Sequence record: MK250019.1
Direction: 5' to 3' (one strand)
Length of the DNA: 64,000 nucleotides
Part shown: positions 2,004 to 44,165 of the stretch, piece after piece
Layout of the letters: every line of letters starts with the position of its first letter
How positions within the stretch are numbered: the stretch's first letter is position 1
Notes under the pieces: model-generated
What the model was told of the DNA's origin: nothing
The model's input: the letters and a program-made list of their open reading frames with translations, nothing else
Database searches by the model: none
Made by a program: the position numbers and the translations under genes

Positions 2004-2013
2004 CAAAGATACA
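2004..2013 (-). promoter_or_regulatory. Bacteroidota-type -7 promoter box TGTATCTTTG
   Basis: Contains TAnnTTTG; one of 8 identical intergenic copies. Confidence 0.7.
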
Positions 2014-2035
2014 TNNNNNNNNNNNNNNNNNNNNN

Positions 2036-2769
2036 TTAAAGTGTAAAATATTGATCATCATTAGTTTTACCAAATGGTAATTTATATGTTCCTTGTAATT
2101 TGCAATTTTGACCAGTAAAATAAAATATTCTTATATTATATCCATAATACCAAGGTTCTCCATCATAATATTTTATTTCATTATTTTCAGCTGCAATAAA
2201 TAATCCACTCATATATATGTGATCTGGATATGCATCAGATGACTTACTATACACACATGTCATTGTACATAAAGGATATATAGAAGACGTAATTTTAATA
2301 GCACTCCAAAAAGATGGCGAATTTTTTAAAGTACCATTAGTATCAATAGATGGATATGCGCCATTACTACCTATGTTTCTTATAAATACTTTATATGTGT
2401 AAGTTATAGATGTGCTTTCTTTTTTTGTAATATATTAAATAGTGGTGTACCATTATAACTAAATGTAATAGTTCTGGATGTATCTGTTTTTGATATATTT
2501 ATATATATACTTCTAACTGTTGTTGTATCTTCCCCTTCTGCATCATCTAATATAGAGGCACTACAGTCAGAGTAATTAGAATCTAATGAAAAACTATTAT
2601 TACCTAATGTTCCTGTAAAATTTCCATCATCTGTTTGTAAGCCAAAAAAAATTTGTGGTGATGTTGTTCCTGTAGCAGTATCAAATAATTGTGTTTTTAA
2701 TATACCTTTTGCCCCTCTACTAGCAGAAACTGTTATAGTATTGTTTGTATATTTCTAAAATTTAGACAT
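2036..2769 (-). CDS. Ser/Thr-rich beta-type protein (BACON-like end to the first domain), split by a -1 shift at A AAA AAG
   Basis: ATG 2769 with TAG at codon 5; the zero frame stops at TAA 2404; the -1 frame is open from 2420 to TAA 2036. Confidence 0.55.
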
Positions 2770-2908
2770 AAAATTATAATTTATTTTTATATCTACATCT
2801 AATTATGAAATACAATAAGTTATTATACATATCTAATAAAAGAATTTAAATTATAAAAATAAATGGTTAGATTCTTTATTTCGTTTAAGAATCTAACCAT
2901 TTTCTTAT

Positions 2909-3952
2909 TTATGCCTGATAAGAATACTTGTCAAACATTGAATCAATATTAGAGGGATGTACAGCATTAATGCCGATTTCATCGCATTTTCTTAATGTAT
3001 CATGAAAATCATCTATAAGACATACCTCTTTAAGATCCCACTTCATCTTATGAGCAAGCTGCTCAATAAAGACGTGCTTGAAATTTTTATTTCCAACGAA
3101 CATTCGGTTCTCAACAGGAATTTCAGGAAAATATTTATCAAGCCATTCATTCTTCTCCTTCCACGCAATTGAATTGGCACATGCAGTAACAATATATACA
3201 TTATTCATGTCATAATGTTCCTTTACAAAATCAATAACATGTTTCACTGGTTTCAGATTTTTAAATAGTTCGCTACTTACAAAATCGGAATTACCATGAA
3301 TGTCAAGTTTTGCTTTGCCATAACAGGCTAATGTACCATCCATGTCAAGAAGTAAATACTTATTAGTAAAATAATCAACGCGTATGAATTCATCTACTAA
3401 TGGAATATATTTATTCTTACATGCTTCAATACGTAAGTTTTTCTTATAAATATCTTCAACTGGAACTTTACGAGTTCGACCTTGAAGTCTCTTTATACAA
3501 ACTTCTACTGGAGTATCGAAGAATACACAAGTAATCTTATCTACATTATGTTCTCTTAAATAATCTATAATACTAAGATTATAATGATTATTAATTCCAC
3601 CACCATCAAGAATAATATTAACGTTTAGATTTTTTGATTTTGCAATTTCAAAAATCATTCGTCTTGCTAATTGAACAGAATCCTCATGAACAACTTCAGG
3701 ATGTTCATCAGTATATCCTTCTAACATAGGTTTAATTTCATCGGCAGAAATAATCCATGTAGAATTATCAATTAAATTATTCTCTAATGCCTCATTAATG
3801 TCTTCAAATGAATAATCATCAAATGGATGTGTTGTTGACAATAGAGTTGACAACATATCACATAAATGACCTGCATCTGAATAATTATTTGAAATAAACG
3901 TAGACTTGCCAGAACATGGCAACCCTACGAAATACATAAACTTACTGATCAT
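2909..3952 (-). CDS. Polynucleotide kinase/phosphatase-like protein (AAA_33 kinase plus HAD domain; PseT architecture)
   Basis: Walker A GLPCSGKS; HAD motif LLDMDGTL; LIDD. Confidence 0.8.
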   Translation of the reverse strand: MISKFMYFVGLPCSGKSTFISNNYSDAGHLCDMLSTLLSTTHPFDDYSFEDINEALENNLIDNSTWIISADEIKPMLEGYTDEHPEVVHEDSVQLARRMIFEIAKSKNLNVNIILDGGGINNHYNLSIIDYLREHNVDKITCVFFDTPVEVCIKRLQGRTRKVPVEDIYKKNLRIEACKNKYIPLVDEFIRVDYFTNKYLLLDMDGTLACYGKAKLDIHGNSDFVSSELFKNLKPVKHVIDFVKEHYDMNNVYIVTACANSIAWKEKNEWLDKYFPEIPVENRMFVGNKNFKHVFIEQLAHKMKWDLKEVCLIDDFHDTLRKCDEIGINAVHPSNIDSMFDKYSYQA

Positions 3953-3958
3953 AACCTA

Positions 3959-4894
3959 TTATAAATTAAATTGATCTTTAATTCTATCCCATTTTCTATG
4001 TAATATATCTGTACATTGTATAGCATAATTATATAACTTAATAACATCATTTTTTCTAGAAAAATATGCTTGTATACAATTATGATTATCTATACGTAAA
4101 TGAAAATTAATATTATAATACTAATTAATAAGATTAAATAATTCAATATATAAAGATTTCCAACTTATATGATTACTTATTGATATTGATATACTATTTC
4201 TCGATTTAGAAATACATCCATCACCATCTAGAAATCCTATTAAAAAATATATTAAATATACTTTATCATAGAATATTGAAATATCTGGAGGATTATATGT
4301 TTTCTACTTATTTATGAGATTAAAAGTTTTTAACCATTTTTCACAAAATGATTTATCTCCTATACGTATATAACAATTCATATATTTCCCAAAAGTAGAA
4401 TTTGCTTCATGTTCTCTAACATTTGTATTTAATTTATCTGCTAATAACTATAAATTATGTTTATCTTTATTAGAAAGAGATATAATAAATTCATTTCTTG
4501 CAGATATACAACCGTCAGCCATAAAAAATCCCCACCAATAATAGACTTCTTTATTATTTAAATTATTCATAAAATTTAAATTACCATGTCTACGACGATT
4601 TATATTATGTGAAAATTTCATTCGTTCACACGCTTGAAACTAAATAGCATTATAACTAAGATTTGGAAATGCATCTAATAATTCCTATTTAGATGCATTA
4701 TACCATAAATCTCTTAATTTTTCATTATTTTCATTAGTCCACTTAAAATTACAATGTATTTGTAATTCATGAGCTTTCTTTTTAATTGCACTTTTTGTTC
4801 TATTTGGTAATAATTTAATACATTCAGTTAATCCTGATATAGGATAATACTACTTTAATATATTAATTTCATTATCAGTCCAAAAATTATACAT
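3959..4894 (-). mobile_element. Free-standing double-motif LAGLIDADG homing endonuclease (311 aa, TAG=Gln)
   Basis: WGFFMADGCIS and IGFLDGDGCIS motifs; 936 nt open apart from at least 5 TAG codons. Confidence 0.85.
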
Positions 4895-4912
4895 AGAAAA
4901 TTAATATTAATT

Positions 4913-6493
4913 TTAGATTGTGCCATCAAGAAGTTTATGAACTGCATCTTGACGTGTTTTACGAATTTCTGCAAGTGTAAACTCTTTTACAAGCTTACCG
5001 TCTTCAAACACCGTCTTCAATTCATTCTTATCTGATGCTTCATCTTCAATAGAAACTCGATCAATAGGTTTATAATTACCATTTTCATCCTTTACAACCA
5101 TAATAAGACCACGATGTGATTTCTTTGGTGTACCAGTAACAGTCTTTGGATCTTTAAAAATTTCAATAGATTTCCCATTTACAGAGCACCATGTTGCCTT
5201 ACATGCAAATGCTAATTGATCTCTAGTATTCATTTGAAAAGAAAATGATCCAATTCCCAAAATCAAATTAGTAGCAGCAAACATCTTATCTTCAAGTTGT
5301 GCATAAATCATTCTTTGACGTTTCATATTGATAGAATCACCATAAAGAAGTCCAATATGTGTATCAAGTACTTTATATCCCTTCTTATTAAATGTTCCAC
5401 CAAATATATTCCAAAGAAATTCATATGAACCCATCTTTACAAATTGATCATTTGCTTCTGAATCACCACAAATAATCTTTACAGGATCACCACTATCAGG
5501 ACGGATAACTACTCGACCATTTCGACTCATAATCTGTTCCTTATACTTAGGTACGATCTTTGTAATAAAATACCAATAATCATAGCCGTCTGCTACAATA
5601 GAAATAATACCATCAGGAAATTCATCAAGCATTCTCTTAAAATAAATTTCATCATCAGGAATACCAGAATCATTTGTTGCATTTGAACATTCCACTGAAT
5701 GTTCTGTTGCTGGTACTGTAGCTGCAATTAATTCTTTCTTAGGGTCTGCTTTATAATAGTACTCAATCATTTTAATTGCAGGTACCGATTCAGAACCACA
5801 AAATGATGTAAGATGTGCCATGCCTGAAGTGATTGTAGTTTCAAGAGAACTCATACCTCTCATTGAAAAATCATGACACAAAAAATCAAGGTTAGACAAA
5901 TCATTAGGATTATAAAAACCTGTTTTCATTGCATGTCTAACAAGTTCACGTCTATAAACATCTGAAATTGTAGCGGATGTCATTGGTTGCCACAAAATAT
6001 TTGAAAGAATAGACTCCAAATAATTAGTAAGCCAAGCAAAATCAGGATGTGTGTTTGTGATTGTCAAAACAGGACATCCGATTGGACAATATGAACCTTC
6101 AGGAAGTGCCTTAATTCTAATAGGGAGATAACCAAGCTTATGCAAAGCAATAATATGATCTACTCCTACTTTCTTTGCAACTGCTTCACCAAGAAATGAT
6201 GTAGTTAAATCAGTATATGTTTTTCTAACAGTATCTTCATCAAGGTTAAAGAAGAAATTATTAAACGTATTAATAAGATACTTCTTGATAAAATACTGAA
6301 TACCAAATACAACTACACCTTCATTTGCCTCTGGGAGGTACTTATTTCCTCGTGGTGTAAAATTACTAAAAAGTTGTGTCATTCCCTTAGGATACATACA
6401 GTGATGACCAAGCTTGTAGCCATCAGTCATAAGCATTGCATTGAGAAGTATGTCTTCTACCATTACATGCTGAGAATCTTTTACGTTTGTCAT
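4913..6493 (-). CDS. nadV: Nicotinamide phosphoribosyltransferase (NAMPT)
   Basis: TDGYKLGH, HDFSMRG, PATEHSV, VIRPDSGDP, LLYGDSI. Confidence 0.95.
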   Translation of the reverse strand: MTNVKDSQHVMVEDILLNAMLMTDGYKLGHHCMYPKGMTQLFSNFTPRGNKYLPEANEGVVVFGIQYFIKKYLINTFNNFFFNLDEDTVRKTYTDLTTSFLGEAVAKKVGVDHIIALHKLGYLPIRIKALPEGSYCPIGCPVLTITNTHPDFAWLTNYLESILSNILWQPMTSATISDVYRRELVRHAMKTGFYNPNDLSNLDFLCHDFSMRGMSSLETTITSGMAHLTSFCGSESVPAIKMIEYYYKADPKKELIAATVPATEHSVECSNATNDSGIPDDEIYFKRMLDEFPDGIISIVADGYDYWYFITKIVPKYKEQIMSRNGRVVIRPDSGDPVKIICGDSEANDQFVKMGSYEFLWNIFGGTFNKKGYKVLDTHIGLLYGDSINMKRQRMIYAQLEDKMFAATNLILGIGSFSFQMNTRDQLAFACKATWCSVNGKSIEIFKDPKTVTGTPKKSHRGLIMVVKDENGNYKPIDRVSIEDEASDKNELKTVFEDGKLVKEFTLAEIRKTRQDAVHKLLDGTI

Positions 6494-6696
6494 AAAATTA
6501 ATTTATTTGTTTTTATTATTTGATTACAATAATAATCTGTTTGTTTGATTAACTGTAATCGTTATTTATATATTATGTTAACTTTAAAGTCTATATTTTT
6601 CATTAAAAAATAACATCCTATTTTCACAAACAAGATGTTATTATTTGATTTAATTTTTTATATGTTTAATTATAAAAATAAAAAGGATCTTTTTAA

Positions 6697-7242
6697 TTAA
6701 GCAACTTCACGTACTTCCCAATCACTGATTTCTACATCATACTTTTCTTTGTTAATTGAAATAGATTTGATGTTCTTAAGCGACAATGTACGATATTCAA
6801 TAACTGCAGTACTTGCCTTTTTCTTTGGCATAAATCTTTCCATATATGCTTTGTCAACTACAGAAATTGGTTCATCATTAAGAATAATGTTATTCTTGCA
6901 GTAGTTGTTAGGAATGTAAATCAAACATACATTACCTGTACTGATATACTGCATGATGACATTCTTAACAATATGACGTCTATTTGTATCAGTTGCCTTA
7001 TAATCTTCTCCAAGAATTTTACTCATTGTTTTCTCATAATCCTGTCCAAAATGGAAAGTTACAGAGAAACTTGTACGAGGCTGAAAGTCATCCTTGATTC
7101 TTTCCTTTGGAAGACCATCGGTGTTGAACTTATTCAACTTAATATCTGATTCACCATAAACGGTTACATATTTACCATTACACTTAGCGTTTGCCATAAT
7201 GTTGATGAACTCGTCTACTGATGTGATAATATTTGTATTCAT
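6697..7242 (-). CDS. Hypothetical protein
   Basis: 181-aa ORF behind a TGTATCTTTG box. Confidence 0.75.
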   Translation of the reverse strand: MNTNIITSVDEFINIMANAKCNGKYVTVYGESDIKLNKFNTDGLPKERIKDDFQPRTSFSVTFHFGQDYEKTMSKILGEDYKATDTNRRHIVKNVIMQYISTGNVCLIYIPNNYCKNNIILNDEPISVVDKAYMERFMPKKKASTAVIEYRTLSLKNIKSISINKEKYDVEISDWEVREVA

Positions 7243-7282
7243 AATTTTTATTTTTTAATTGTTTATTATTTCATTAACAATA

Positions 7283-7292
7283 CAAAGATACA
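7283..7292 (-). promoter_or_regulatory. TGTATCTTTG -7 box
   Basis: About 40 nt upstream of the ATG at 7242. Confidence 0.75.
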
Positions 7293-7337
7293 CATTTTAT
7301 TCCAAATAAAAAAATATATAAAGATAAAAACTATATT

Positions 7338-7484
7338 TTATTTAAAATTATCTCTGATGAACTTATCTATCACATCTTTTACAGAATTACATTTAAATTG
7401 TGTTTCAACATAACTACCAGTCCAATCTGTATGAACTTTGAAGTTATCTAAAAACCATTTAGATATTTTTTCTTTATTCATCAT
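7338..7484 (-). CDS. Small hypothetical protein (48 aa)
   Basis: MMNKEKISKWFLDNF...; ATGA overlap with the upstream gene. Confidence 0.55.
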   Translation of the reverse strand: MMNKEKISKWFLDNFKVHTDWTGSYVETQFKCNSVKDVIDKFIRDNFK

Positions 7485-7735
7485 TTTTGATTTTTTAAGT
7501 CATCAACCAATCGTTCTGTTTCTTTTAATAGAAAACGCAATACTATAAATAATTCACAAAGGATAAAAATAAACATAATCCATAATATAGTATTATTATC
7601 ATGTTTTTCCATTAATATAAAAAACATAATTATATCTATAGATGTAAACGGAAGAATTAAATATATTATCCAATTTATTATATGGCGCCAAATTCGTTCT
7701 TCTATATAATTATTTTGTTTTATATTATTATTCAT
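7481..7735 (-). CDS. Small membrane protein
   Basis: Two hydrophobic segments. Confidence 0.65.
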   Translation of the reverse strand: MNNNIKQNNYIEERIWRHIINWIIYLILPFTSIDIIMFFILMEKHDNNTILWIMFIFILCELFIVLRFLLKETERLVDDLKNQK

Positions 7736-7740
7736 ATTAC

Positions 7741-8118
7741 TTATTGTTTAATTTCTCTTTCTAAAATATTCTTTAATACCCATAATAACATATTATATGC
7801 AGTTTCTAACATATTATCATCTGCCGTAGTTTCTGCATGATAAATATCATCATTTTTAATATATTGTAATTGAATACATACAGGAGTAATAACAAGGAAA
7901 TAATCTAATGTTATAATATCATCAATACGTTTATAAATATCTTCTAACGTATATGTATAAAAACCTAATTTACATTTGATAATAGTATCAATATACTTTT
8001 CATTTTTATTTAAATTATATTGTCCCTTACCCATATAAACAAGGGAAGCATCTGAAACATCAAGACCTGCATTAATAAGAGTATCCATCTGTTTCTTTGT
8101 TAAAGCTATTTTGTTCAT
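7741..8118 (-). CDS. Hypothetical protein
   Basis: 125-aa ORF, first gene after a promoter box. Confidence 0.7.
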   Translation of the reverse strand: MNKIALTKKQMDTLINAGLDVSDASLVYMGKGQYNLNKNEKYIDTIIKCKLGFYTYTLEDIYKRIDDIITLDYFLVITPVCIQLQYIKNDDIYHAETTADDNMLETAYNMLLWVLKNILEREIKQ

Positions 8119-8144
8119 AATTATTTCGTTTTTATATTACTATA

Positions 8145-8154
8145 CAAAGATACA
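8145..8154 (-). promoter_or_regulatory. TGTATCTTTG -7 box
   Basis: 27 nt upstream of the ATG at 8118. Confidence 0.75.
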
Positions 8155-8223
8155 TATTTTATTCTAAATAAAAAAGAGAGATACTAAAATATAAAGTATC
8201 TCTCTTAAAATTATTATTAATTA

Positions 8224-9240
8224 TTACATGATATATTGTAAAAGCATTCTTGTTTCTTCATCTTGCCCGAGTTTTTTATTAGCCTCTCTCAAAATCTAAT
8301 TAACTCGTGTTTCTGTCATATTGTTTTCTTCTGCAATTTGCCAGGTATTTTTCTCTGGACGACCATTAATAGCGTAGCATGCACAAACAATTTCACCATT
8401 TCTTTTACCCATAACTCTCTTGATATTATCTTCAAGTTCTCTTGTTATATCTTCATTTTCAAGGTTACTTCCAGGCTCATTGAAAACATTATTTGTTGTC
8501 ATATCACCTAATGTTACTTTAGAATCTCCATCATCTCCAACAGATTGATCTAAACTATTTGCACGAGCATTTGCTTTCATCGTCTATACAAATGAATCAT
8601 AAGTTAAATTAGGGTGTTTCTTAACTAATACATCATAAATATCATCAATATCAGGTTCATAACCATTCTTATTAAATAAACGTTCTTTTACACGAGCAGC
8701 TTCACGAGCAATACTACCCATATTACGAGGAACTGCCATATGACCACCTACTTCATCAACTGCCATCATAATCTCTCGACGAATATACCAAATAGCATAT
8801 GATACAAATTTTACATCTTTTTCTGGTGTACTTGGATCATATGTTTCAGCTGCTTTCATAAGTCCAATATTACCATATTGAATTAAATCTTCTTTAGGAA
8901 TATTAAGATTTTTATACTTATTAACAACAGTAACAACAAACGGAAGATTTGCAGAAACTAATTTATTTTTTGCTGCCTCTACCTATCTCTTATTTGACGA
9001 ATGCTGAATAATATCTGCAAGTTTGCATTCATCTTCATGTGTTAATCTTTGTTTCTTATTAATTGCTTTTAAATATGCTACAAATGATTTTGCTGTATTT
9101 TCATCCTATGTAATAGTAAAATCATCATGTAAATCCATATGCATTCCATTATTATCTTCATTAAGAGTATTTCGTAATGAACGAGAAATACCTTCCATAA
9201 GGCTATTATACAATGCTTTCTTTTTATTAATTACTCTCAT
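8224..9240 (-). CDS. RNA polymerase sigma-70 family factor (338 aa, 4 TAG=Gln)
   Basis: Region 1.2 YLKAINKKQRLTHEDE; region 2 LVSANLPFVVTVV..DLIQYGNIGLMKAAETYD..KFVSYAIWYIRREI; region 4 HTH TWQIAEENNMTETRVN(Q)I. TAGs at 9106, 8983, 8584, 8296. Confidence 0.9.
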
Positions 9241-9331
9241 ATTTTATTTAATAAATTAATTTCAATAATTTATTATATTTATCAATATATAAAAATAGAG
9301 AATAGTTATCCCAACTATTCTCTATTATAAT

Positions 9332-9892
9332 TTAGTTATCCTGTACAATATTTAATATATGTTTAATCTTTTCTATATCATTATCTGTTATCCCTGTATA
9401 ATTATCAATGTGCACAAAATTATTCATTTGTTTGTCTAACATATCTTTATCATCATCTACAATACAATACTCTATATTTAAATTATCACTATTAAAAAAT
9501 TTTATATCATATAATGCAATATTATATGTTTGTGCACTTTTATCTAATACAATCGTTAAAAAATCATCTATTTCTTTTCCACGTGGTATATTATCTAAAT
9601 TTATATAATTTGGTGTTATTCCGACCATATATTTGTTTAAGGGTTTTAAATCTTTATATCGTTCAAATTCATGTTTTGTTGCTTCTAATGTAAATATTCT
9701 CCAAGATGATGATATAACTAATCTTACATTATACTTTTCACAAAGTTCTTTTATTTTAAAAACTGCTTTTTTATCGATAAAAATATCTCCTCCATTTTTT
9801 ATATATTCTTTTCCTTTATCATTTTCTGTACACCATATTGCATATTCTTCGGAATTTAAAACACCATCTATATCTAAAAATAAAAGTTTCAT
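9332..9892 (-). CDS. HAD-family protein (Swiss-Army-knife RNA-repair type)
   Basis: LFLDIDGVLNS, VISSSWR, YCIVDDD. Confidence 0.8.
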   Translation of the reverse strand: MKLLFLDIDGVLNSEEYAIWCTENDKGKEYIKNGGDIFIDKKAVFKIKELCEKYNVRLVISSSWRIFTLEATKHEFERYKDLKPLNKYMVGITPNYINLDNIPRGKEIDDFLTIVLDKSAQTYNIALYDIKFFNSDNLNIEYCIVDDDKDMLDKQMNNFVHIDNYTGITDNDIEKIKHILNIVQDN

Positions 9893-9916
9893 AATTTACA
9901 ATATATCTTATTTCAT

Positions 9917-10243
9917 TTAATCATCATCAAAATTATCATATATAGAAATTTTATTCTTTTTTCGTTCTTTCTGCTTTTCAATACACGGGAAACAGTATTC
10001 ACCAATACCTTTTATATATTTTTCATTTGTATATGTTGGTTCACCTTTAAAATTAAAATTTCGTTGTTCACCGTATGCAATATGTTTCTTCTTTTTCCAT
10101 TTAACAACTTTATCATGTTGTACTTCAATATCTCGAAGCTCTTTATATTTATTTTTTATTTTATATTTTTTATCGCCTTCTATAACAAAACTAGATGAAC
10201 CTTTTTTACTAATTTTATGTGACTGATGATAACTTCTAGACAT
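9917..10243 (-). CDS. Basic hypothetical protein
   Basis: 108-aa ORF within an operon. Confidence 0.65.
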   Translation of the reverse strand: MSRSYHQSHKISKKGSSSFVIEGDKKYKIKNKYKELRDIEVQHDKVVKWKKKKHIAYGEQRNFNFKGEPTYTNEKYIKGIGEYCFPCIEKQKERKKNKISIYDNFDDD

Positions 10244-10541
10244 CTTTTATATTATATATTTTATTTTTAAAATGTTTTAAAAAATCTTGATATTGCTCAT
10301 AATTTAATTCAATAAAATCATATTTTAATTTAAAATCAGTATTATTATTTGATAAACCATAATAAGAATCTGGTTGTTTATACAAAATCTGTTTATTGTA
10401 ATAAATTTTATATGTATCGTACATACGATTTGAATAACCAGTAGGCTTATATATTTCGACAGAAATAATACTACTTATCGGTATAATTTTACCATCTGAT
10501 GTACTAATATAATCATATTTTTTCTTTAATTTTATTGACAT
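10236..10541 (-). CDS. Hypothetical protein; ends at TAG, or 7 aa later at TAA 10215
   Basis: 101-aa ORF overlapping the next start. Confidence 0.65.
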   Translation of the reverse strand: MSIKLKKKYDYISTSDGKIIPISSIISVEIYKPTGYSNRMYDTYKIYYNKQILYKQPDSYYGLSNNNTDFKLKYDFIELNYEQYQDFLKHFKNKIYNIKDV

Positions 10542-10551
10542 ATTTTTTTAA

Positions 10552-10953
10552 TTAATATTCATCATCTATTTCATCACATAAATCTAAAAATTCCTCCTGT
10601 ATTGCATTATCCAAAATTTGAAATTCTCTGCGTTCGTTATATTCGTCTTCTGATTTAATCGCATCTGCCCAATCTGCATCAATATCATATACTTTTCTTG
10701 TATCTGTTGACATAACACGAATCATATTATGAATTTCTTTTTGCTTTCTGAATCCATAATCAGAAATATATCGTTCTACAAGAATTTCTTTTTTAAATAT
10801 AGGAATAATACAAATGAGTTTCGTATTCATTTCATCTTTCTCACATGAATGAATACCAGGAATCAACAATACAGACTTACCTGTTTCTACATTTATATTA
10901 TATGATGTATTACTGCGAAGAAATACAAGATCACCAATTTTAAATTCTGCCAT
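10552..10953 (-). CDS. Hypothetical protein
   Basis: 133-aa ORF after a promoter box. Confidence 0.7.
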   Translation of the reverse strand: MAEFKIGDLVFLRSNTSYNINVETGKSVLLIPGIHSCEKDEMNTKLICIIPIFKKEILVERYISDYGFRKQKEIHNMIRVMSTDTRKVYDIDADWADAIKSEDEYNERREFQILDNAIQEEFLDLCDEIDDEY

Positions 10954-10993
10954 AATTTTAATATCTTATTAATATTGTTTATTATTTACAATA

Positions 10994-11003
10994 CAAAGAT
11001 ACA
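10994..11003 (-). promoter_or_regulatory. TGTATCTTTG -7 box
   Basis: About 40 nt upstream of the ATG at 10953. Confidence 0.75.
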
Positions 11004-11107
11004 CATATTATTTGAATTAAAAAAATAAAAAAAGAAAAATCTTAATATATTATTTCTATAATAAGAATATATATATTAAGATTTAACGTTTTAAGCCTAT
11101 GAAATAG

Positions 11108-11208
11108 TAGATGTAGGGAGACTTGAACTCCCAAATTCCATACCTAGAATACCATGAAATAAACTCAAAATATTATTGAGTTGCGTTTACCCATTTCGCC
11201 ATACATCT
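11108..11208 (-). tRNA. Class II (Leu/Ser-like) tRNA-like gene with an abnormal 9-nt anticodon loop and 30-nt variable arm
   Basis: Acceptor AGATGTA/TACATCT; D arm GCGAAATGGGTAAACGC; T arm GGGAG-TTCAAGT-CTCCC; anticodon stem ACTCA/TGAGT around ATAATATTT. Confidence 0.65.
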
Positions 11209-11420
11209 ATAAAAAGGTAGTTTCTTATCCGAATGCAGTCTAACTACCAAACCTTGAGTATCACATTTCGTACGTTTCCCAGATATTGTGACATCTGCTT
11301 ACTATATTACTATAATAAGTTAATCCTTGAATCACTTAAACCTAATTTAATAGGGATACATGTCAATCCATGATTAAAAAGTCTTTAGCTTAACAATATT
11401 AAAAAATATCGCAAGGATTG

Positions 11421-11492
11421 CAGCCCTAATAAGATTCGAACTTATAACATCACAATTAAATATTATGTGCTCTACCATTGAGCTATAGGGCC
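11421..11492 (-). tRNA. tRNA-Lys(TTT)-like gene with A instead of U at position 33
   Basis: GGCCCTA/TAGGGCT; GCTC-AATGGTA-GAGC; CATAA-TATTTAA-TTGTG; ATAAG-TTCGAAT-CTTAT. Confidence 0.7.
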
Positions 11493-11579
11493 AAGGTCTT
11501 ATTTTAAATTTCCACGCAATAAGACCTTAGATTTTTGTAGATATGTGTTCATAGTACTTAAACTAATGCTTGTAAATAT

Positions 11580-11671
11580 ACTGACGTGTTAACCACTTCA
11601 CCAATCGCCCATATATATTGTTTTTTGCTTTAATTGAGGGCAATACGGGAATCGAACCCGTGTTGGTCAGT
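11580..11671 (-). tRNA. Candidate circularly permuted tRNA gene (3' half 11671-11637, 26-nt linker, 5' half 11610-11580)
   Basis: The halves complement each other in the acceptor (GGGCGAT/ATTGCCC) and anticodon (TCAGT/ACTGA) stems; canonical D and T arms. Confidence 0.7.
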
Positions 11672-11871
11672 AAAATTCATGATGTATCACGAATGAACTA
11701 TGACAATCTAACATTTACTGTAATACTAAAGCTCTTGACTCAATGCTAATGCTAAAATCTAGGATTTTGTTTATGCTAAATGTAATCAAGCTAATGCTTT
11801 AGTCAATTTACATTATTTATATATCAAACAATATACAAAGTCTATTTTTATTCTTAAAATAATTTCACTTA

Positions 11872-11879
11872 AATAAATA
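11872..11879 (+). promoter_or_regulatory. T4-late-like promoter AATAAATA
   Basis: About 30 nt upstream of the ATG at 11908. Confidence 0.45.
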
Positions 11880-11907
11880 TCATAAATGAAATAGTTATCG
11901 TAACTAA

Positions 11908-15741: not shown

Positions 15742-15870
15742 TTAAAATAAATCAATAATTATTTTATATATTTATTTTATTATAATTATTTATTATAACA
15801 TTATCATTTACCATAAAATTAAAGAGTATAACTTTTAAATTATACTCTTTATTCTTTATTTTGTTTTTAA

Positions 15871-16500
15871 TTATAAAATTGTTGTCCATGCTTCAAATAC
15901 TGCATCATCATATTCTTCATAAGGAATAGTAATATATCCATGATCTGCCCATGATGTTCCCCAGGAATTTCTAATAATAAAACCTTGCTTATTAAATCCA
16001 ATTACTAATGTACAATGCCCTCCTGCATAATTAGATCCTTTTCTCCAAAAATATGGATCGTTATCAGTATAAACTGGAAACCCCGCAGCTACCGGGCCAA
16101 ACATAATTAATGCACGTTTTAAAACTTCTCCTGATGGAACTAAAGCATATGAATTAATTTTTTCTCCGTTTAAACCATTAGTTTTAAGATATTTTAATGC
16201 TTCTTTTATAGACATGCCTTCCTATGGTTTATTTGAACGAGAATTATATAATGTATTAATAGAAAAATTATTACATTTACCATCAGTTCCTACTTTACTG
16301 TTATGAAGATAGTCAAGTACACCAGTTAATGATTGACATACACAAGTCTATGTATTACCCTAATCACGAACAGGAGGCATAACATCTCTTAAAGAAAATT
16401 CATCAGGTAATGGTATTTTTGAATCAACATTTACTATTTGTTCTGTACCATCTAATTTAGACGGAATGCAACCATAAAAATGTTTCTACTTATTATCCAT
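15871..16500 (-). CDS. Papain-like (C1) cysteine peptidase (209 aa, TAG=Gln)
   Basis: PVRD(TAG)GNT(TAG)TCV; GGHCTLVIGF; IIRNSWGTSW. Confidence 0.9.
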
Positions 16501-16546
16501 ATGTCATTAAATATATTTTATATATTTATTTTCTATATAATAAAAG

Positions 16547-20828: not shown

Positions 20829-20866
20829 AATTGTAAAAAATTAAAAATATTACTAATGTCATGTCG

Positions 20867-29996: not shown

Positions 29997-30060
29997 GGTT
30001 TTTAAATAAAAATAGCTATTTCTTATTTTACTAAGAAATAGCTAAAAAGTTTTAATAAAT

Positions 30061-33429: not shown

Positions 33430-34437
33430 TTATAAATTGTCTATTTTTCTAATAATTTTTTCTAATTTTATTTTCATATCATTTATATTAATAGGAAATA
33501 TTTCATAATAATTTAATTTATTATTAATAGCAATATTTCTTTTATTAACATCTCTATATCTCCAATTATATGCTGCATTTTTATAATAGTCTGATTTATT
33601 CATCCATTTATTAAATAAATTTATATCATCTAAATCGTTTTCATTAAATGGATGTTTTCCATGTGTCCAACTTGCATTAATTTCTATATATGTATTTTTA
33701 TCTTCAATATAAAAATCACAATTAAATGGATATTCTTCAGATTTATATTGTCTTATTACTTTATTATAATGTTCAATTAATATATTATATGCAATATCTT
33801 CATATTTAGATGTATTAAATGTATTATTACGTTCTTTTGTTTTATTTGATTTATTTTTAATATCATCTAATTGAAATACATTGTTTATATTAGAACCATA
33901 TTTATTATGTAATGTTTTTAAGACTTTATCTTTATTTAAAAATGCATATTCATAACCTGTTTTAGTTTTAATTGTATTACGAATTTTATCTCTTATTTCT
34001 TTTCGTTGTAAATTATAATTAACATTATAATTTTTTTGATTAGATAATTTACAATTAGATATTGATTTTTCTTTAATTAAGTCATTTTTCATAGGATTAT
34101 CAACTCCATACTTTTTTAAACAAGTATCCTTTTGTTTTCTTAATGTAATTTGTTTTCCTTTATCAGAATATTTACAATTATTAGAACAAAATGTTTTATA
34201 TCCTAATGAAAATCTTTCTAACTTTATTTCTTTATGACATATAGGACATAAAGGTCTATTGCTTAAATGATAAAGAATCATATAGAGACATTCTGATAAC
34301 TTTATATTTTCGATATGTTTAAATTTATCTTTTATATAAAGTTGATCTTCTGTATCTATATGATTCCAATATTGACAATTATTTTTAATAGAATTATTTT
34401 CTATATATTTTGATATTATCTAATTATCTTTATTCAT
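33430..34437 (-). mobile_element. Putative homing endonuclease: Zn-ribbon, KYGV repeat, C-terminal PD-(D/E)xK-like domain (335 aa; TAG at codon 6)
   Basis: CPICHKE..TFCSNNC, CLKKYGVDNP, YPFNCDFYIEDKNTYIEINASWTHG; start extended to the ATG at 34437. Confidence 0.7.
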
Positions 34438-37096: not shown

Positions 37097-37106
37097 CAAA
37101 GATACA
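37097..37106 (-). promoter_or_regulatory. TGTATCTTTG -7 box
   Basis: About 40 nt upstream of the ATG at 37056. Confidence 0.75.
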
Positions 37107-37164
37107 TATTTTATTTCAAATAAAAAAATCAGTTACCTAAAAAAATAGATAACTGATTTAATAT

Positions 37165-38550
37165 TTAATAATACTTATCTCTTGAAATTTCATATGTATT
37201 TTCACTTTCATTAAAATCACATACAGAGTTATTATCTACATCAAATATAACCTGACGTGTTAATTCAGTAACAACATATGGAGCATCAGAAGGCCAACGA
37301 TATTTAAGATGTTTTGATGTCTTTGTATATGTACATATAAGTTTCCTATTATTTAAATTAATATTAATTTTATCAACATCTTTCTGATCACAAAAATAAT
37401 GTGATTGATTATGTTTACCAATAATATATAATTTTTGATTTTTATTATATTCTGAACATTCTCTAATGATAGTTCTATATGCATAAGTTGCATCTGCCAT
37501 CTTAGTTTTTGTTAAATCTATAATCTTATTATAATAGTTTTTATTGATATATTCAAGAATATCATAATCAAGATAACCTGTCCATGGAGTTATCGCTATA
37601 TTATCAATCATCTTATCGATTTCATCATTTGTAAAAATTTCAGAAATTAATAAATCAACATATTCGCCATCGGATTCATAAGTTTTACTGAGTTTCACAA
37701 TTTCTTCATTAAGATCTGCTTTCTTAACAGATTTAATATATGATTTATAACATGAATATGCAACATCTTTTAAATCATTATTAATATCAATATGAATTAT
37801 AGGCACATTTATCTGCTTTAAAACAGTTTTTAATTCTTCTTTATATATTTTATAAAACTCTTCTTTATATGAACATGTAAGTTCTCTCATATAATCATAT
37901 ATTGATTTATCTCCAATAATATCAGATAATAATAATTTTAATGTACCATCTTTATCAATTCGCTTACTCTCACTTTTAGGATATATCTCTAATTTTCCAT
38001 AAGTTGTAATAAAATGTTCTTTTTTATATTTCTTTAAAATAAAACCATTAAATGAAAAATAATAAGCATTTTCTTTACAATCACAATAAGGCATCCAATA
38101 ACGTTGTTCTAATGTTATATGTATAGTAAACAACTTTTTTCTTGATTTATCACATTGCTCTTTAAACTTAAACATTGCTCTAGAATATGCAAGTCTTTCA
38201 TATCCTAAAAGTGATTTATAATTATAAGTACCATTATAAGAATCATCTAACCCTTCAAATTCATTGTATAAATTAAATGTATCTGCATGTAGTGGTAAAC
38301 CTGTTATCTTAATATTAAAGAAATTATATTCATTTTCTTTATATGAAGTATTTGTAAGTTTTGAGTATGTCAAAAGTTTACTTAAGAAAAACGATTTATA
38401 AAAATTTTGACATTCATTTATAAGAGCTTGTGCTTTATAATATTCTTCAACAAAATGACTTAAGTCTGAATAATTATTATAATCTGTCTTATGAAGTTCT
38501 ACTAATGATTTTTCTTTATCATTAATATCAAATTTATCTATATTATTCAT
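37165..38550 (-). CDS. Hypothetical protein
   Basis: 461-aa TAG-free ORF. Confidence 0.8.
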   Translation of the reverse strand: MNNIDKFDINDKEKSLVELHKTDYNNYSDLSHFVEEYYKAQALINECQNFYKSFFLSKLLTYSKLTNTSYKENEYNFFNIKITGLPLHADTFNLYNEFEGLDDSYNGTYNYKSLLGYERLAYSRAMFKFKEQCDKSRKKLFTIHITLEQRYWMPYCDCKENAYYFSFNGFILKKYKKEHFITTYGKLEIYPKSESKRIDKDGTLKLLLSDIIGDKSIYDYMRELTCSYKEEFYKIYKEELKTVLKQINVPIIHIDINNDLKDVAYSCYKSYIKSVKKADLNEEIVKLSKTYESDGEYVDLLISEIFTNDEIDKMIDNIAITPWTGYLDYDILEYINKNYYNKIIDLTKTKMADATYAYRTIIRECSEYNKNQKLYIIGKHNQSHYFCDQKDVDKININLNNRKLICTYTKTSKHLKYRWPSDAPYVVTELTRQVIFDVDNNSVCDFNESENTYEISRDKYY

Positions 38551-40262: not shown

Positions 40263-40337
40263 AATAACTAAAAATAAAAAGGTTACCTACCCTAATGTAG
40301 GTAAGTAACCTTGTAGTAATATTAATAAATTAACTTA

Positions 40338-40893: not shown

Positions 40894-41526
40894 TTAAAAA
40901 TCTTTTTTAAAAGTATCTACTTTTTTATGTTCACTATTAATATAATTTAATTCAGATATATATGAATCATAAAGAATTTCGCCAAACTTATCTTTCTTAA
41001 ATTCTTTTTCATAATTATCATCAGTAAATTCAATTTTTACTTTCTTTACACCCTTTCTAAATTTATTAATTATTTCAGGAGTAACATGCCAATAATTAAT
41101 ATTACGAGAAACATCTATAGAATTTGAATTATATGTAGATGTAATCCTATTCTTCCATACTGTTGATGTTATAGTAGGTTTAGCATATTGTATTGTAGTT
41201 TCTGTATATTCTGATGTAACTGAATGCAATTCTATAACTTCGTCATCCATTAATTTTACAAGCATTCTTGCATTATTAAATACACCTAATGGATATGAGG
41301 AATTCACATTTGTTATAACACAAAAACTTGTATCATTTGGTGAAATCCATGTTTGCAAACCAATATTTAAAATTTTACTATCAGTAAATTTACGTACACA
41401 TGTGCCTAATGCTTCTATTGTTCTCACAGAATCTACCTGTTTATCAACAACAATTTTACGTGTTTGAGCATTTACATTCGTAATAGTTGCAATCAACATT
41501 ACAAAAATTAACAAATACTTTTTCAT
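40894..41526 (-). CDS. Secreted protein (signal peptide)
   Basis: MKKYLLIFVMLIATITNVNA-Q cleavage pattern. Confidence 0.75.
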   Translation of the reverse strand: MKKYLLIFVMLIATITNVNAQTRKIVVDKQVDSVRTIEALGTCVRKFTDSKILNIGLQTWISPNDTSFCVITNVNSSYPLGVFNNARMLVKLMDDEVIELHSVTSEYTETTIQYAKPTITSTVWKNRITSTYNSNSIDVSRNINYWHVTPEIINKFRKGVKKVKIEFTDDNYEKEFKKDKFGEILYDSYISELNYINSEHKKVDTFKKDF

Positions 41527-41566
41527 ATCTTTATATTTTTAATTGTTTATTATTTTATTAACAATA

Positions 41567-41576
41567 CAAAGATACA
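41567..41576 (-). promoter_or_regulatory. TGTATCTTTG -7 box
   Basis: About 40 nt upstream of the ATG at 41526. Confidence 0.75.
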
Positions 41577-41612
41577 CATTATTCTTTAAATAAAAAAATA
41601 ATAGCCAAATAA

Positions 41613-42851
41613 TTATTGTTTATTAATCCATTCTTTTACTTCATTAATATTCCAAAATTCTATATAATTCAAATTATTCTACTATGATATATTCCTTTTT
41701 TTCAAATCTAATATAGTCCATGTATAAATAATATTATCATATTGTGACTTCTTACCATTTTTATGTGCATTAGAATTTTCTGCTTTTTCTTTTAAGTTAT
41801 TCAGCTCATTTAAATCATATTCATTATTTTCATTAAATGGATGATAATGATGATAATGAGATCCGTTATATTCAATATATAAATCTAATGATGGTATATA
41901 AAAATCACAATTAAATGGATACAATTCTGATTTATATTGTCTAATACAATCTGAATATTTTTCTTTTAATAAATCAAAACATACATCTTCTTGATATGAT
42001 ATATTAAATGAATTATTTAATAATTTTGTATTATAAATTTTTTTCTATATTTCATTACTACTTAATATAGATGAAATTAAATTTTTATAGTATTGTGTCT
42101 ANNNNNNNNNNNNNNNNNNNNNCTTTTCTAAACATGTATTTTTTATTTTATCTTTTACATATTTAAGTTGACCAATATTTACGATACTATTAATATCATC
42201 TTCATTAGAAGCATATTTTTTAATACATGTATCTAATGACTAATTTCGAAATTTTTGAACTTTAAATACAGAATCAACACCATACTTTTCTAAACATGCT
42301 TTATGAGTTTTTTCTATTTTTTCAGGAATCTAACCTGTATACTCAACACCATATTTTTGTAAACATGTTTCTTTTGATTTTTGTTTAAATATTTCAGATT
42401 TTAAAGGGGATGTTACTCCATATCTTTGTAAACATGTTTCTCTTGCTTTAATTCTATTAGAATAATGTTCATCTCCATATTTTAATAAACATGTTTCTCT
42501 TATTTTATTATTAATCTATTGCTTTTTATCTACATCACTATATATGTCTTTTAATACTTTTTTAACTGTTATACCATCTAACATATTTGCATGTTCTTTA
42601 CAACATGTTTTATTAAATAATTGATTCTTTTTACCATTCAAAAATTTAACAGGTTTTCCACAAATAACACATACAGGGCGAACCTCTATATTATACTGTA
42701 TTCTCTTAATTGTTTCTCTTAATGACTATGAATCAGTATAGCGATTATCTAAATATTCCTTATACTCCTCAGAAATATTAGTTAATCGCTATACATTTAC
42801 ATGTCCATTAGATTTAATAAAATAATCTAATATAATCTAATCTGTTACCAT
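41613..42851 (-). mobile_element. Putative homing endonuclease, paralog of 33430-34437, with tandem CLxKYGV repeats; spans an N gap; TAG=Gln
   Basis: MVTD(TAG)IILDY..., CVICGKP, repeated TCLQ(R/K)YGV, YPFNCDFYIPSLDLYIEYNGSHYH. Confidence 0.7.
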
Positions 42852-42853
42852 AC

Positions 42854-43699
42854 TTAATAATTTTCATTTTTAGGTTGATCAACCTTATCATATGTTCCAT
42901 ATGTATTAAAATATTTCTGGAAATCACATGTCTTTACTTTGAAAATAATTCGCTCACCTCTACGTGACTGTAATCCAATAGGTGTACGAAGAACAAGTCC
43001 CTCTGCAAGATGTGGTTCCTCTGCAACCTTTGAATTAAATCCCTTCTTCACAAATTCAATTGCCTCATCTACAGTAAATGTACCCATAAATGGAACAATA
43101 TCGACACCGAGCTTCTTAAAAATTTCATCTCGATTCTCACGAAGCAAATACATATCATCTACCTTCACATCAAATCCAATAAATGAATTATCTTTTCTAT
43201 AGTATCCACCTGATTGAATTCCTGCACCAAATCCTTCACCATACAATGTATATCTCTTTGGAATTTTCGTTTCATCAAGTTCATATACATTGAATTGCGT
43301 ATTAAGTACGGACCATGTTTTTTCTTGCATTAGTTCATCTGTCACATACATTTCTTTAGAAAGACCCAATGCATTCAATACCTTATCTTCTGTCAATTCA
43401 GTTGTAAGATATGCATACAGCATCTTTGGGATCTGTGCATTATCAGTCTTTCCCTTATATGCAACATTCCACTTAATACCGATATTATTACCAATATCTG
43501 ATGTGATAAATTCACGGGTTACTTCAATTCGAGTGTTAGTTCCGTCTACCTTCTCCTCTGCATCAAACTTGCAATCCCGCAACCATTCCAACTCAGGTAC
43601 TGCAAATTCATCATAAGGCATGATTACATTATTTGCATCTCTCTTAAAGATTGTGTTAATCTTCTGATAAGTATTCTCACTTCTTTTCTGTTTACCCAT
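42854..43699 (-). CDS. RNA ligase (Rnl2-like nucleotidyltransferase)
   Basis: Motif I EKVDGTN; LYGEGFG; FIGFDV; EGLVLR; IFKVK. Confidence 0.88.
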   Translation of the reverse strand: MGKQKRSENTYQKINTIFKRDANNVIMPYDEFAVPELEWLRDCKFDAEEKVDGTNTRIEVTREFITSDIGNNIGIKWNVAYKGKTDNAQIPKMLYAYLTTELTEDKVLNALGLSKEMYVTDELMQEKTWSVLNTQFNVYELDETKIPKRYTLYGEGFGAGIQSGGYYRKDNSFIGFDVKVDDMYLLRENRDEIFKKLGVDIVPFMGTFTVDEAIEFVKKGFNSKVAEEPHLAEGLVLRTPIGLQSRRGERIIFKVKTCDFQKYFNTYGTYDKVDQPKNENY

Positions 43700-43755
43700 A
43701 ATTTAATATTTAATATGATTTATAATGTTTATAACTTATATTTGATAAAAAGTCT

Positions 43756-43929
43756 TTATACTGTTAATTTTTCAATTTGTTTATCAGCAGATCTCGCAAG
43801 AGATTTAAATCTACCGATATAATATTTTATGACTTTATCAACGTATTCAATGTTTGTTGTTTCTTGATAATCGTTCCAGAAATTATCACATAAATCTTTC
43901 GCTTTTTCTGAATAAGTTTTCTTTTTCAT
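43756..43929 (-). CDS. Small hypothetical protein (57 aa)
   Basis: MKKKTYSEKAKDLCDNFW... Confidence 0.55.
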   Translation of the reverse strand: MKKKTYSEKAKDLCDNFWNDYQETTNIEYVDKVIKYYIGRFKSLARSADKQIEKLTV

Positions 43930-43936
43930 TTTTATA

Positions 43937-44113
43937 TCATTTTACCTAAAATAATTCATATGGTACAATTTCATTCTCTTTAATTTCAATAGCATCACAT
44001 GTATGAACATACTCACCATGTTTTTCCATAAGTGAACGTGCTTCTACATCATCAATAGCATTCACCAAGAAAAGACCTCTATCCGTTTTTACTTTATATA
44101 ATGTAATATCCAT
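43937..44113 (-). CDS. Small hypothetical protein; TAG three codons before TGA
   Basis: MDITLYKVKTDRGLFLV...; first gene after a promoter box. Confidence 0.55.
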
Positions 44114-44155
44114 AATTTTATTATTTTAATTTACTTCAATATTTTATTAACATCA

Positions 44156-44165
44156 CAAAGATACA
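44156..44165 (-). promoter_or_regulatory. TGTATCTTTG -7 box
   Basis: 43 nt upstream of the ATG at 44113. Confidence 0.75.

Follow-up and report, generated by a model that had tools for sequence, protein, structure and literature searches.

The predicted promoter boxes and their genes

The window, a stretch of 64,000 nucleotides, is part of the Prevotella megaphage Lak-A2 (MK250019.1, 99.8-99.9% identity), a giant gut phage that reads the stop codon TAG as glutamine. Positions 1-12000 map to 124001-136000 of the Lak-A2 record as one piece and positions 36000-60000 map to 160000-184000. Translation with TAG as Gln opens long reading frames, for example one of 2499 aa with 26 TAG. Two runs of N, at 2015-2035 and 42102-42122, have the same length as the corresponding stretch of the record and their flanks are therefore continuous; the ORF 41613-42851 keeps its frame across the 21 N of the latter.

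The 10-mer TGTATCTTTG occurs exactly eight times, at 2004, 7283, 8145, 10994, 20200, 37097, 41567 and 44156, whereas dinucleotide shuffles give 0.18 copies on average with a maximum of 2. All copies are on the minus strand and lie between ORFs called with TAG as Gln. The end of the box is 26-42 nt from the ATG in seven copies and 97 nt from it in the copy at 2004, where the nearer ATG opens only a 15-codon mini-ORF. A T tract (TTTTTTTATTT) lies 11 nt upstream of the box in the copies that can be read; the N run at 2015-2035 hides spacer and T tract of the copy at 2004. Three of the seven readable copies (8145, 20200 and 37097) have a strong hairpin abutting the T tract, with dG of -10 to -13 and z of -4 to -6. 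The first downstream gene is TAG-free in seven of eight cases, and in the eighth (43937-44113) the only TAG is codon 56 of 58. Thus, the observation of the earlier note, which described eight minus-strand, intergenic boxes behind T-rich tracts or terminators and ahead of genes without internal TAG apart from near-terminal ones, is confirmed, except that the upstream context of the copy at 2004 is masked.

We refer to these predicted promoter modules (T tract, 11-nt spacer, core) as class 1. The core at 2004-2013 is followed by the TAG-free genes 1301-1906 and ClpP (580-1188). The module at 7283-7315 heads 6697-7242 and NAMPT (4913-6493), both TAG-free, and the module at 8145-8205, with a terminator hairpin, heads the TAG-free genes 7741-8118, 7481-7735 and 7338-7484. 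The module at 10994-11026 precedes 10552-10953, 10236-10541, 9917-10243 and the HAD RNA-repair gene 9332-9892; the second gene of this unit has its only TAG at codon 102 of 108. The hairpin-bearing module at 20200-20260 precedes 19364-20167, 19042-19353 and the phage tmRNA. The module at 37097-37155, whose terminator hairpin is kept by compensatory changes in Lak-B2, heads the run that contains SAM lyase, DnaK and DnaJ. The module at 41567-41599 precedes seven TAG-free genes (40894-41526 down to 37165-38550). Finally, the module at 44156-44188 heads 43937-44113, 43756-43929 and RNA ligase (42854-43699), and is paired back to back with a box of a different kind for the opposite strand.

Further downstream in the same direction there are TAG-bearing genes, most of which have their own promoter of the second class described below or are homing endonucleases. 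A LAGLIDADG homing-endonuclease gene with 6 TAG (3959-4894, minus strand) lies inside a class-1 unit and is absent from Lak-A1, so it is a mobile insertion. A GIY-YIG homing-endonuclease-like gene with 10 TAG (20969-21739, minus strand) is an exception inside a TAG-free stretch. It lies between two suppressor tRNAs with anticodon CTA on the minus strand, one at 20866-20938, confirmed by Rfam, and one at 21771-21845, called by ARAGORN only, which starts 16 nt after the TAG-free gene 21861-22211. The promoter of the unit carrying these tRNAs was not found. The ORF 41613-42851 (minus strand, 10 TAG), whose upstream half is DUF7487, follows RNA ligase in the unit from 44156.

A second predicted promoter class on TAG-bearing genes

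We found a complementary predicted class, A-ATAAATA-N4-AA, located about 26 nt before the ATG and with the geometry of a T4 late promoter. ATAAATA lies upstream of 64 of 88 TAG genes against 26 of 142 TAG-free genes, and 30-39 nt before the ATG in 43 of 88 against 12 of 142. The logo has A at 71% before the motif and AA at 94% and 85% five to six nt after it, with no conservation upstream.

In the window, class-2 boxes on the minus strand are found at 9276-9282, preceded by a terminator hairpin, for an RpoD/RpoS-like sigma gene (8224-9240); at 15769-15775 for 14488-15741 (11 TAG); at 16523-16529 for the papain-like protease gene 15871-16500 (4 TAG); at 18509-18515, after a terminator hairpin, for the T4-type portal gene 16589-18484 (10 TAG); and at 46749-46755 for 45241-46719 (7 TAG). 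On the plus strand they lie at 11873-11879 for the lysozyme-like gene 11908-13125 (5 TAG); at 44196-44202, the partner of the class-1 module at 44156, for the TAG-bearing gene 44231-44968; at 49001-49007, heading the TAG-rich block 49040-54179; and at 54247-54253, after a terminator hairpin, for the 2499-aa ORF 54282-61781. Two boxes stand back to back at 27025-27047 (27025-27031 minus, 27041-27047 plus) for the TAG-bearing genes 26478-26999 and 27074-27520.

Association with TAG usage in Lak-A2 and Lak-B2

The earlier note had proposed a genome-wide motif scan against TAG density as a test of its reading, and the outcome is strongly positive. The 541-kb genome, in which 383 of 620 ORFs are TAG-free, holds 54 exact copies of the class-1 core spread over both strands. 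Of these, 48 are intergenic and co-oriented with a gene start, mostly 21-47 nt away, and 47 of the 48 precede a TAG-free gene, against 25.9 under circular shifts (P=0.0008), a test that allows for clustering. Class-1 units carry 2.2 TAG per 1000 codons and class-2 units 11.3. When only the promoter directly upstream is considered, class 1 precedes 36 TAG-free genes and 1 TAG-bearing gene, and class 2 precedes 17 and 73 (odds ratio 155, Fisher p=1.6e-17). Lak-B2, with 56 copies of the core, replicates this with 24 to 0 against 18 to 49 (p=5.9e-11). The separation is not complete, as 17 TAG-free genes carry a class-2 box and some units probably have both kinds of promoter. Moreover, 86 TAG-free genes with an upstream gap of at least 60 nt have neither box and no third motif emerged, so the two-class picture is incomplete.

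The class-1 core is essentially invariant while its flanks vary, and orthologous sites in Lak-B2 have an identical core and T tract but diverged spacers and leaders. Only the TC variant among the 16 forms of TAnnTTTG is enriched between genes, at 0.99 against 0.06 per kb. The core lies 22 nt after a T tract, often a terminator tail: 43-47% of the modules have a hairpin abutting the T tract (43% with dG of -6 or lower), against 14% of control intergenic 40-mers. About a quarter of the copies (11 of 48) share a nearly identical leader with an inverted repeat.

Sigma factors and polymerases

Lak-A2 has three sigma-like genes. The gene at 8224-9240 (minus strand) encodes a sigma-70-family protein of 338 aa (regions 2, 3 and 4; RpoD/RpoS-like) with 4 in-frame TAG, and a TAG-free sigma of 316 aa (regions 2 and 4) is encoded in a class-1 unit. 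The third, at 29610-29996 on the minus strand, is a gp55-like late sigma gene of 128 aa from the ATG at 29996, with TAG at codons 20, 33 and 46. It sits 8 nt after the terminator hairpin that follows dnaJ and has no promoter box of its own. It matches phrog_234 ('late sigma transcription factor') at 9e-11, and at 1.4e-9 in a search of the genome; T4 gp55 (7d7c_F) is its only PDB hit, with an E-value of 0.017. The three TAG codons are unchanged in Lak-B-type genomes, although with 30 synonymous changes in 128 codons this has about a 0.45 chance of happening without selection.

No RNA polymerase beta or beta-prime gene is detectable in Lak-A2, with positive controls in 14 of 14 genomes, and no T7-type polymerase domain was found in a search that had no positive control. 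The 2499-aa ORF and other giant ORFs lack a DxDGD motif; the one exception, a 1682-aa ORF outside the window, gave no polymerase hit in Pfam, PHROGs or PDB.

Comparison with known promoters and recoding systems

The class-1 box contains a perfect Bacteroidota -7 element, TAnnTTTG, in the form TATCTTTG in all 54 genomic copies, and is followed by an A-rich leader of about 20-35 nt without a Shine-Dalgarno sequence, as in primary-sigma promoters of B. fragilis, B. thetaiotaomicron and Segatella copri (PMC7366714; 10.1101/2024.04.05.588293). TATCTTTG is also among the commonest -7 boxes of evident host-type promoters in Bacteroides phages B40-8 and crAss001, a comparison that covers phages and no Prevotella genome. 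However, nn is always TC, TG always precedes the box, and almost no degeneracy is seen over about 50 copies. The canonical -33 TTTG at 19-21 nt is absent and a T run takes its place, with a TTTG/A only 12 nt upstream of the box in part of the copies. This last feature is weak, since in S. copri the -33 box is found at only 15% of primary starts.

The class-2 box resembles the T4 late promoter as described in PMC2988020, an 8-bp TATAAATA-type box one helical turn before the start without a -35 element. Both are 8-bp A/T boxes with nothing conserved upstream, a conserved A lies six nt downstream at the position expected for the start, the box is used on both strands in front of structural genes, and a gp55-family sigma is encoded. 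AATAAATA is a known T4 variant, found at 9 of 50 sites. In contrast to T4, A rather than T is the majority first base, the gp55 homologue is shorter (128 against 185 aa) and carries in-frame TAG, and the host is a Bacteroidota instead of a proteobacterium. A search for the gp45 clamp family with PF02916 found nothing in Lak-A2, but also nothing in any control genome.

The modules further recall the PeSL cassettes (promoter-early stem-loops) of T4-like phages, composites of a terminator hairpin and an early-type promoter repeated many times between small early genes (PMC2839356, PMC4122927). Nevertheless, fewer than half of the Lak modules have the hairpin and the sequences are unrelated. PeSL cassettes act as recombination points, but the indels between Lak-A1 and Lak-A2 in 1-12500, at 2520-2840, 3983-4916 and 5248, do not end at a module.

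Regulation of late genes by stop-codon recoding has been proposed before (Borges et al., 10.1101/2021.08.26.457843; Devoto et al., PMC6784885). In this model, TAG-free regions contrast with TAG-rich structural regions, suppressor tRNA and release factor 2 are encoded in standard-code-compatible form, and early genes are proposed to be translated in the host code. Lak-A2 has such TAG-free regions, the two CTA tRNAs and a TAG-free release factor gene in a class-1 unit. Those papers argue from gene function only and do not mention promoters. What is added here is that two sequence-defined promoter classes separate the two codon usages and that the late sigma itself would need suppression.

Who reads the class-1 box?

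The earlier note inferred that the boxes mark early units read by host RNA polymerase in the standard code, in keeping with a Bacteroidota host and a temporal two-code genome. This interpretation is supported: the host of record is Prevotella, and the complementary T4-late-like class makes the two-code reading much stronger. We consider host polymerase with its primary sigma, acting early in infection, the most likely reader, with a probability of roughly 0.6 for the model as a whole. Since no sigma gene has a third kind of promoter, one class must be readable on arrival. The analysis itself establishes both motifs and their positions, their association with TAG use, conservation in Lak-B2 and the identity of the genes, whereas the sigma that reads class 1, the timing, the transcription start sites and the gating of the late sigma by suppression are inferred. 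Contigs of RNA libraries, which cannot show 5' ends, break at 7273-7281 next to the box at 7283, which is suggestive only.

A less likely alternative is that class 1 is read by host core polymerase carrying a phage sigma, either the 316-aa protein or the 338-aa protein, which is made late and could be carried into the next cell. Class 1 would then be a phage-specific class, immediate-early by an injected factor or middle. The near-invariant 10-mer, atypical of promoters read by a housekeeping sigma, would suit a dedicated phage factor. The enrichment of a single TAnnTTTG variant, the missing -33 TTTG and the extra TG, absent from the B40-8 and crAss001 promoters, point in the same direction, as does the presence of two sigma-70-family proteins besides the gp55-like one. 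On the other hand, the 316-aa sigma lies in a class-1 unit, the 338-aa sigma has a class-2 box and the gp55-like gene has none. No sigma gene therefore has a separate host-type promoter to start the cascade, which forces the extra assumption of a virion-borne sigma, while the box is a perfect -7 element used as such by unrelated Bacteroides phages.

Reading by an unrecognized phage-encoded or virion RNA polymerase, as in crAss-like phages, N4 or phiKZ, with a coincidental resemblance to the host box, appears improbable. Invariant cores are typical of dedicated phage polymerases and several very large late proteins, such as that of 54282-61781, have no recognizable family, but the polymerase searches described above speak against it and three sigma-like genes argue for use of the host core enzyme. 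Similarly doubtful is the view that the box is no promoter but a recombination cassette, a binding site for a repressor or packaging protein, or an RNA leader element, linked to TAG-free genes only through clustering in one part of the genome. The shared leaders, the PeSL precedent and contigs of related strains that join promoter copies to each other, a weak indication, can be cited in its favor. However, the copies are spread over the whole genome, co-oriented with gene starts at a narrow distance, they sit just after terminators so that the downstream genes need a promoter there, and the circular-shift test, which allows for clustering, and the Lak-A1 indels in 1-12500 speak against it. A recombination role would not exclude promoter function.

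A model linking the code switch to late transcription

In the most likely model, class-1 modules head units whose genes avoid TAG and can be translated by an unmodified host. These units carry host-takeover, code-switch and regulatory functions, namely SAM lyase, DnaK/DnaJ, ClpP, NAMPT, RNA ligase/repair and a tmRNA, and elsewhere in the genome release factor 2 and the TAG-free sigma factor. Class 2 heads TAG-bearing genes, including portal, protease, lysozyme-like and large unannotated, probably structural, proteins, and is most likely read by the gp55-like late sigma. As the gene for this sigma carries its three TAG codons near its start and lies in a TAG-free, early-type context, it could be transcribed early but completed only once the CTA suppressor tRNAs act, after which late promoters would fire. 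The code switch would thus license late transcription, and the transcription program and the genetic-code switch of this phage appear to be wired together.

Sequence context and recoding

The window is 99.8-99.9% identical to and collinear with positions 124001-188000 of Prevotella phage Lak-A2 (MK250019.1, 541,299 bp), a record that carries no annotation. Lak phages are uncultivated megaphages of Prevotella that read TAG as glutamine (PMC6784885, PMC8346664), and the sequence shows this directly. Under TAG=Q the plus-strand block 49040-64000 becomes a few very long ORFs, one of 2499 aa with 26 TAG, while TGA=W gives nothing comparable. The N runs at 2015-2035, 42102-42122 and 48726-48756 have the same length as the matching stretch of the record, because the alignments are collinear and of equal length, and the flanks are therefore continuous. 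The ORF 41613-42851 stays in frame across its 21 N, and its upstream half is a DUF7487 protein. It has a paralog at 33430-34281 (both on the minus strand), and both genes have zinc-finger-like N termini. Apart from a possible TAG in a short upstream extension, the paralog is TAG-free, whereas 41613-42851 has 10 TAG, which suggests a family that spreads within the genome and takes on the codon usage of late genes.

Class-1 boxes precede TAG-free genes

The earlier note had described eight copies of TGTATCTTTG in front of genes lacking internal TAG, and this observation holds. The box occurs 8 times, always on the minus strand, against 0.18 expected. All copies are intergenic and point at a gene start 26-42 nt away, except for the copy at 2004, where the distance is 97 nt and where the N run at 2015-2035 hides the spacer and T tract, so that this copy is only partly checked. 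The first gene is TAG-free, or has only a TAG two codons from its end. The note had also proposed a genome-wide comparison of the motif with TAG use, and for this we joined the rest of the Lak-A2 record to the window and called ORFs under code 15, which gave 620 ORFs, 383 of them TAG-free. The genome holds 54 exact copies, 26 on the plus and 28 on the minus strand, of which 48 are intergenic and co-oriented with a gene start, mostly 21-47 nt downstream. Of these 48 first genes, 47 are TAG-free, against a mean of 25.9 under circular shifts of the sites (P about 0.0008). Only 5 of 204 genes in units headed by the box have a solely terminal TAG, which argues against TAG serving as a genuine stop in these genes; it is simply avoided there.

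When aligned, the sites share a longer module, consisting of aTTTTTTTATTT, an 11-nt A-rich spacer, TG-TATCTTTG, then TAtTGT and an A-rich leader. In 43-47% of modules, including those at 8145, 20200 and 37097, a stable hairpin abuts the T tract, so that the module is a terminator fused to a putative promoter. The core is strikingly invariant. A position-weight matrix built from the sites recovered only the exact copies, and a scan allowing mismatches with flank scoring showed that this is real, with 51 sites having an exact core in a good flank and only one or two having a mismatch. Of the sixteen TAnnTTTG variants only TC is enriched between genes, at 0.99 against 0.06 per kb. Lak-B2 (baboon, about 82% identity) has 56 copies against 3 for the reversed control, and at three orthologous sites the T tract and core are identical while the spacer, leader and hairpin have changed, the hairpin by compensatory substitutions. 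This pattern is purifying selection on a recognition site, not recent copying.

Eleven of the 48 modules, among them those with leaders at 7243-7282 and 41527-41566, share a nearly identical 40-nt leader with the inverted repeat TTGTT...AACAA, and even the first codons (ATG AAT ACA). This could be a 5' hairpin, an operator, or the trace of duplicated gene heads. Contigs from other samples join one module to another and skip the genes between them (7266-8143, 7269-10975 and 7330-11020). The sides are short (20-27 nt), so these joints may be artefacts, although they could also reflect PeSL-like recombination between modules in related strains. RNA libraries holding this DNA, stored as contigs, gave contig positions only. 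Two of them show very high summed depth over 9400-10800, which fits a unit from 10994 to the terminator near 9300, but such depth should be read with caution and we do not use it as evidence.

A second, T4-late-like class precedes TAG-bearing genes

K-mers upstream of TAG-bearing genes gave ATAAATA, present at 64 of 88 such genes against 26 of 142 TAG-free genes (p=1.3e-16). It lies 30-39 nt before the ATG in 43 of 88 against 12 of 142, and its logo is A(71%)-ATAAATA-N4-A(94%)A(85%), with nothing conserved upstream. This is the geometry of the T4 late promoter, an 8-bp box one turn before the start without a -35 element, and the A-first variant is known in T4 itself (PMC2988020). Within the window this class-2 box precedes the portal (16589-18484) and protease (15871-16500) genes, 14488-15741, the lysozyme-like gene (11908-13125), 26478-26999, 27074-27520, 44231-44968, 45241-46719, the plus-strand block from 49040 and the 2499-aa ORF at 54282.

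Counting the box directly upstream, class 1 precedes 36 TAG-free genes and 1 TAG-bearing gene in Lak-A2, and class 2 precedes 17 and 73 (odds ratio 155, p=1.6e-17). Similarly, in 347 kb of Lak-B2, extended because a smaller locus held too few genes for a test, the counts are 24 and 0 for class 1 and 18 and 49 for class 2 (p=5.9e-11). Whole units carry 2.2 TAG per 1000 codons in class 1 and 11.3 in class 2. The 117-nt spacer 44114-44230 shows the rule in miniature, as a class-1 box points left at TAG-free genes and a class-2 box points right at a gene with six TAG.

Exceptions inside class-1 units are few. The LAGLIDADG gene 3959-4894 (6 TAG) is absent from Lak-A1 and is therefore a mobile insertion, and 20969-21739 is a GIY-YIG endonuclease (10 TAG). 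Others follow large gaps and may have promoters that we did not recognise. In the aligned region Lak-A1 differs from Lak-A2 at 2520-2840, 3983-4916 and about 5248: it lacks the LAGLIDADG gene, has an extra 1.38 kb inside the NAMPT gene near 5248, possibly an intron or intein, and has about 0.87 kb extra near 2850. The two classes do not account for all genes. Upstream of the 86 TAG-free genes that have neither box, k-mer enrichment gave only T-rich terminator tails such as CTTTTTA, and no convincing third motif emerged.

Candidate readers of the two classes

Lak-A2 has no detectable RNA polymerase beta or beta-prime domain, with positive controls in 14 of 14 genomes, and no T7-type domain was found. 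It has three sigma-like genes. A TAG-free 316-aa sigma (regions 2 and 4) is the second gene of a class-1 unit outside the window. An RpoD/RpoS-like 338-aa sigma at 8224-9240 (minus strand) has four TAG and its own class-2 box behind a terminator; one possible reason for making a primary-like sigma late would be packaging into the virion. The third, at 29610-29996, is a gp55-like protein (phrog_234 at 9e-11), with T4 gp55 as its only PDB hit.

No sigma gene has a third kind of promoter, so one class must be readable on arrival; class 2 is the gp55 type, which leaves class 1 for the host enzyme. The class-1 box is a perfect Bacteroidota -7 element (PMC7366714; S. copri in 10.1101/2024.04.05.588293), and in the Bacteroides phages B40-8 and crAss001, which served as a proxy for a Prevotella genome, TATCTTTG is among the commonest -7 boxes of evident host-type promoters. 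Against this, the missing -33 TTTG, the constant TG and the lack of degeneracy would also fit a dedicated phage factor. The search for a hidden virion polymerase yielded no support for one. We rate the host-sigma reading at about 0.6. The note's interpretation, that these are early units read by host polymerase in the standard code of a temporally two-coded genome, is thus supported by the association with TAG use, with the reader and the timing remaining inferences.

Proposed link to the code switch

The only two CTA-anticodon tRNAs of the genome lie in this window, in a TAG-free stretch. Rfam confirms the one at 20867-20938, while the one at 21771-21845 (minus strand) is called by ARAGORN but does not reach the Rfam tRNA gathering score, and the two flank the GIY-YIG gene with its 10 TAG. 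No promoter for these suppressor tRNAs was recognised in 21740-22363 or 25645-25806. Elsewhere, the long 'intergenic' stretches 11004-11232 and 11374-11907 contain several tRNA-like segments (acceptor and T-arm-like sequences), of which ARAGORN and Rfam call only tRNA-Lys at 11420-11492; the rest may be the intron-containing tRNAs mentioned for Lak phages (PMC6784885). The release-factor gene is TAG-free in a class-1 unit. A phage-encoded tmRNA at 18603-18997 (minus strand; Rfam RF00023, 58 bits; tag peptide DDEIDFRMAA) lies at the end of the class-1 unit from 20200, just before the terminator and late promoter of the portal gene, and a ribosome-rescue RNA made with the early genes may matter in a cell whose stop-codon reading is being changed. 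The TAG-free formate-tetrahydrofolate ligase gene 23929-25644 (minus strand) has its best bacterial matches (44-48% identity) in Alphaproteobacteria, Clostridia and methylotrophs, with no Bacteroidota among the best 80, so it was probably not taken from the present host.

The gp55-like gene starts 8 nt after the terminator that follows dnaJ and has no box of its own. Strong terminator hairpins at 30000-30060 and 40263-40337 (minus strand) sit only 8-12 nt before the next ATG without a promoter box between, and the downstream genes, including the gp55-like sigma, seem to depend on read-through or antitermination. The gp55-like gene carries TAG at codons 20, 33 and 46, and under the standard code it therefore yields only a 19-residue peptide. 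The arrangement and the three TAG are the same in Lak-B-type genomes, although, given 30 synonymous changes in 128 codons, this is not significant.

The model that follows, with early units in the standard code, then suppression, then late sigma, then late promoters and TAG-rich genes, is coherent but inferred. The two motifs, their positions, their association with TAG use, its recurrence in Lak-B2 and the gene identities rest on the sequence analysis itself; the sigma that reads class 1, the start sites, the timing and the gating of the late sigma are deduced from them. A more far-reaching and tentative possibility is that the code switch is the timer of the transcription programme. In this view the gp55-like sigma is transcribed with early, standard-code genes but cannot be completed until the CTA suppressor tRNAs accumulate, and only then could ATAAATA promoters fire and TAG-rich virion and lysis genes be expressed. 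Late genes would be locked twice, at transcription and at translation, and homing endonucleases that settle in early units would adopt TAG and thereby be silenced early.

Implications for recoded phages

Temporal promoter classes, T4-type late promoters, terminator-promoter cassettes (PMC2839356, PMC4122927) and TAG-free early regions in recoded phages (10.1101/2021.08.26.457843) are all known. None of the three papers on Lak phages and recoding that we read mentions promoters, and we did not find it described that two sequence-defined promoter classes separate the two codon usages in Lak phages, or that the late sigma needs suppression.

Why some phages recode a stop codon is an open question. 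The leading idea, that recoding keeps late and lytic genes silent until the phage has changed the cell's translation, has so far rested on gene annotations. Here the split is defined by sequence, as one putative promoter class precedes TAG-free genes and another TAG-bearing genes, in two diverged lineages of an uncultivated 540-kb phage in which a late sigma gene itself needs amber suppression. This makes the idea open to direct experiment, and the class-1 module is a candidate strong, compact promoter for Prevotella/Segatella genetics. The two classes also give a simple rule for annotating early and late genes in Lak genomes, most of whose genes have no known function.
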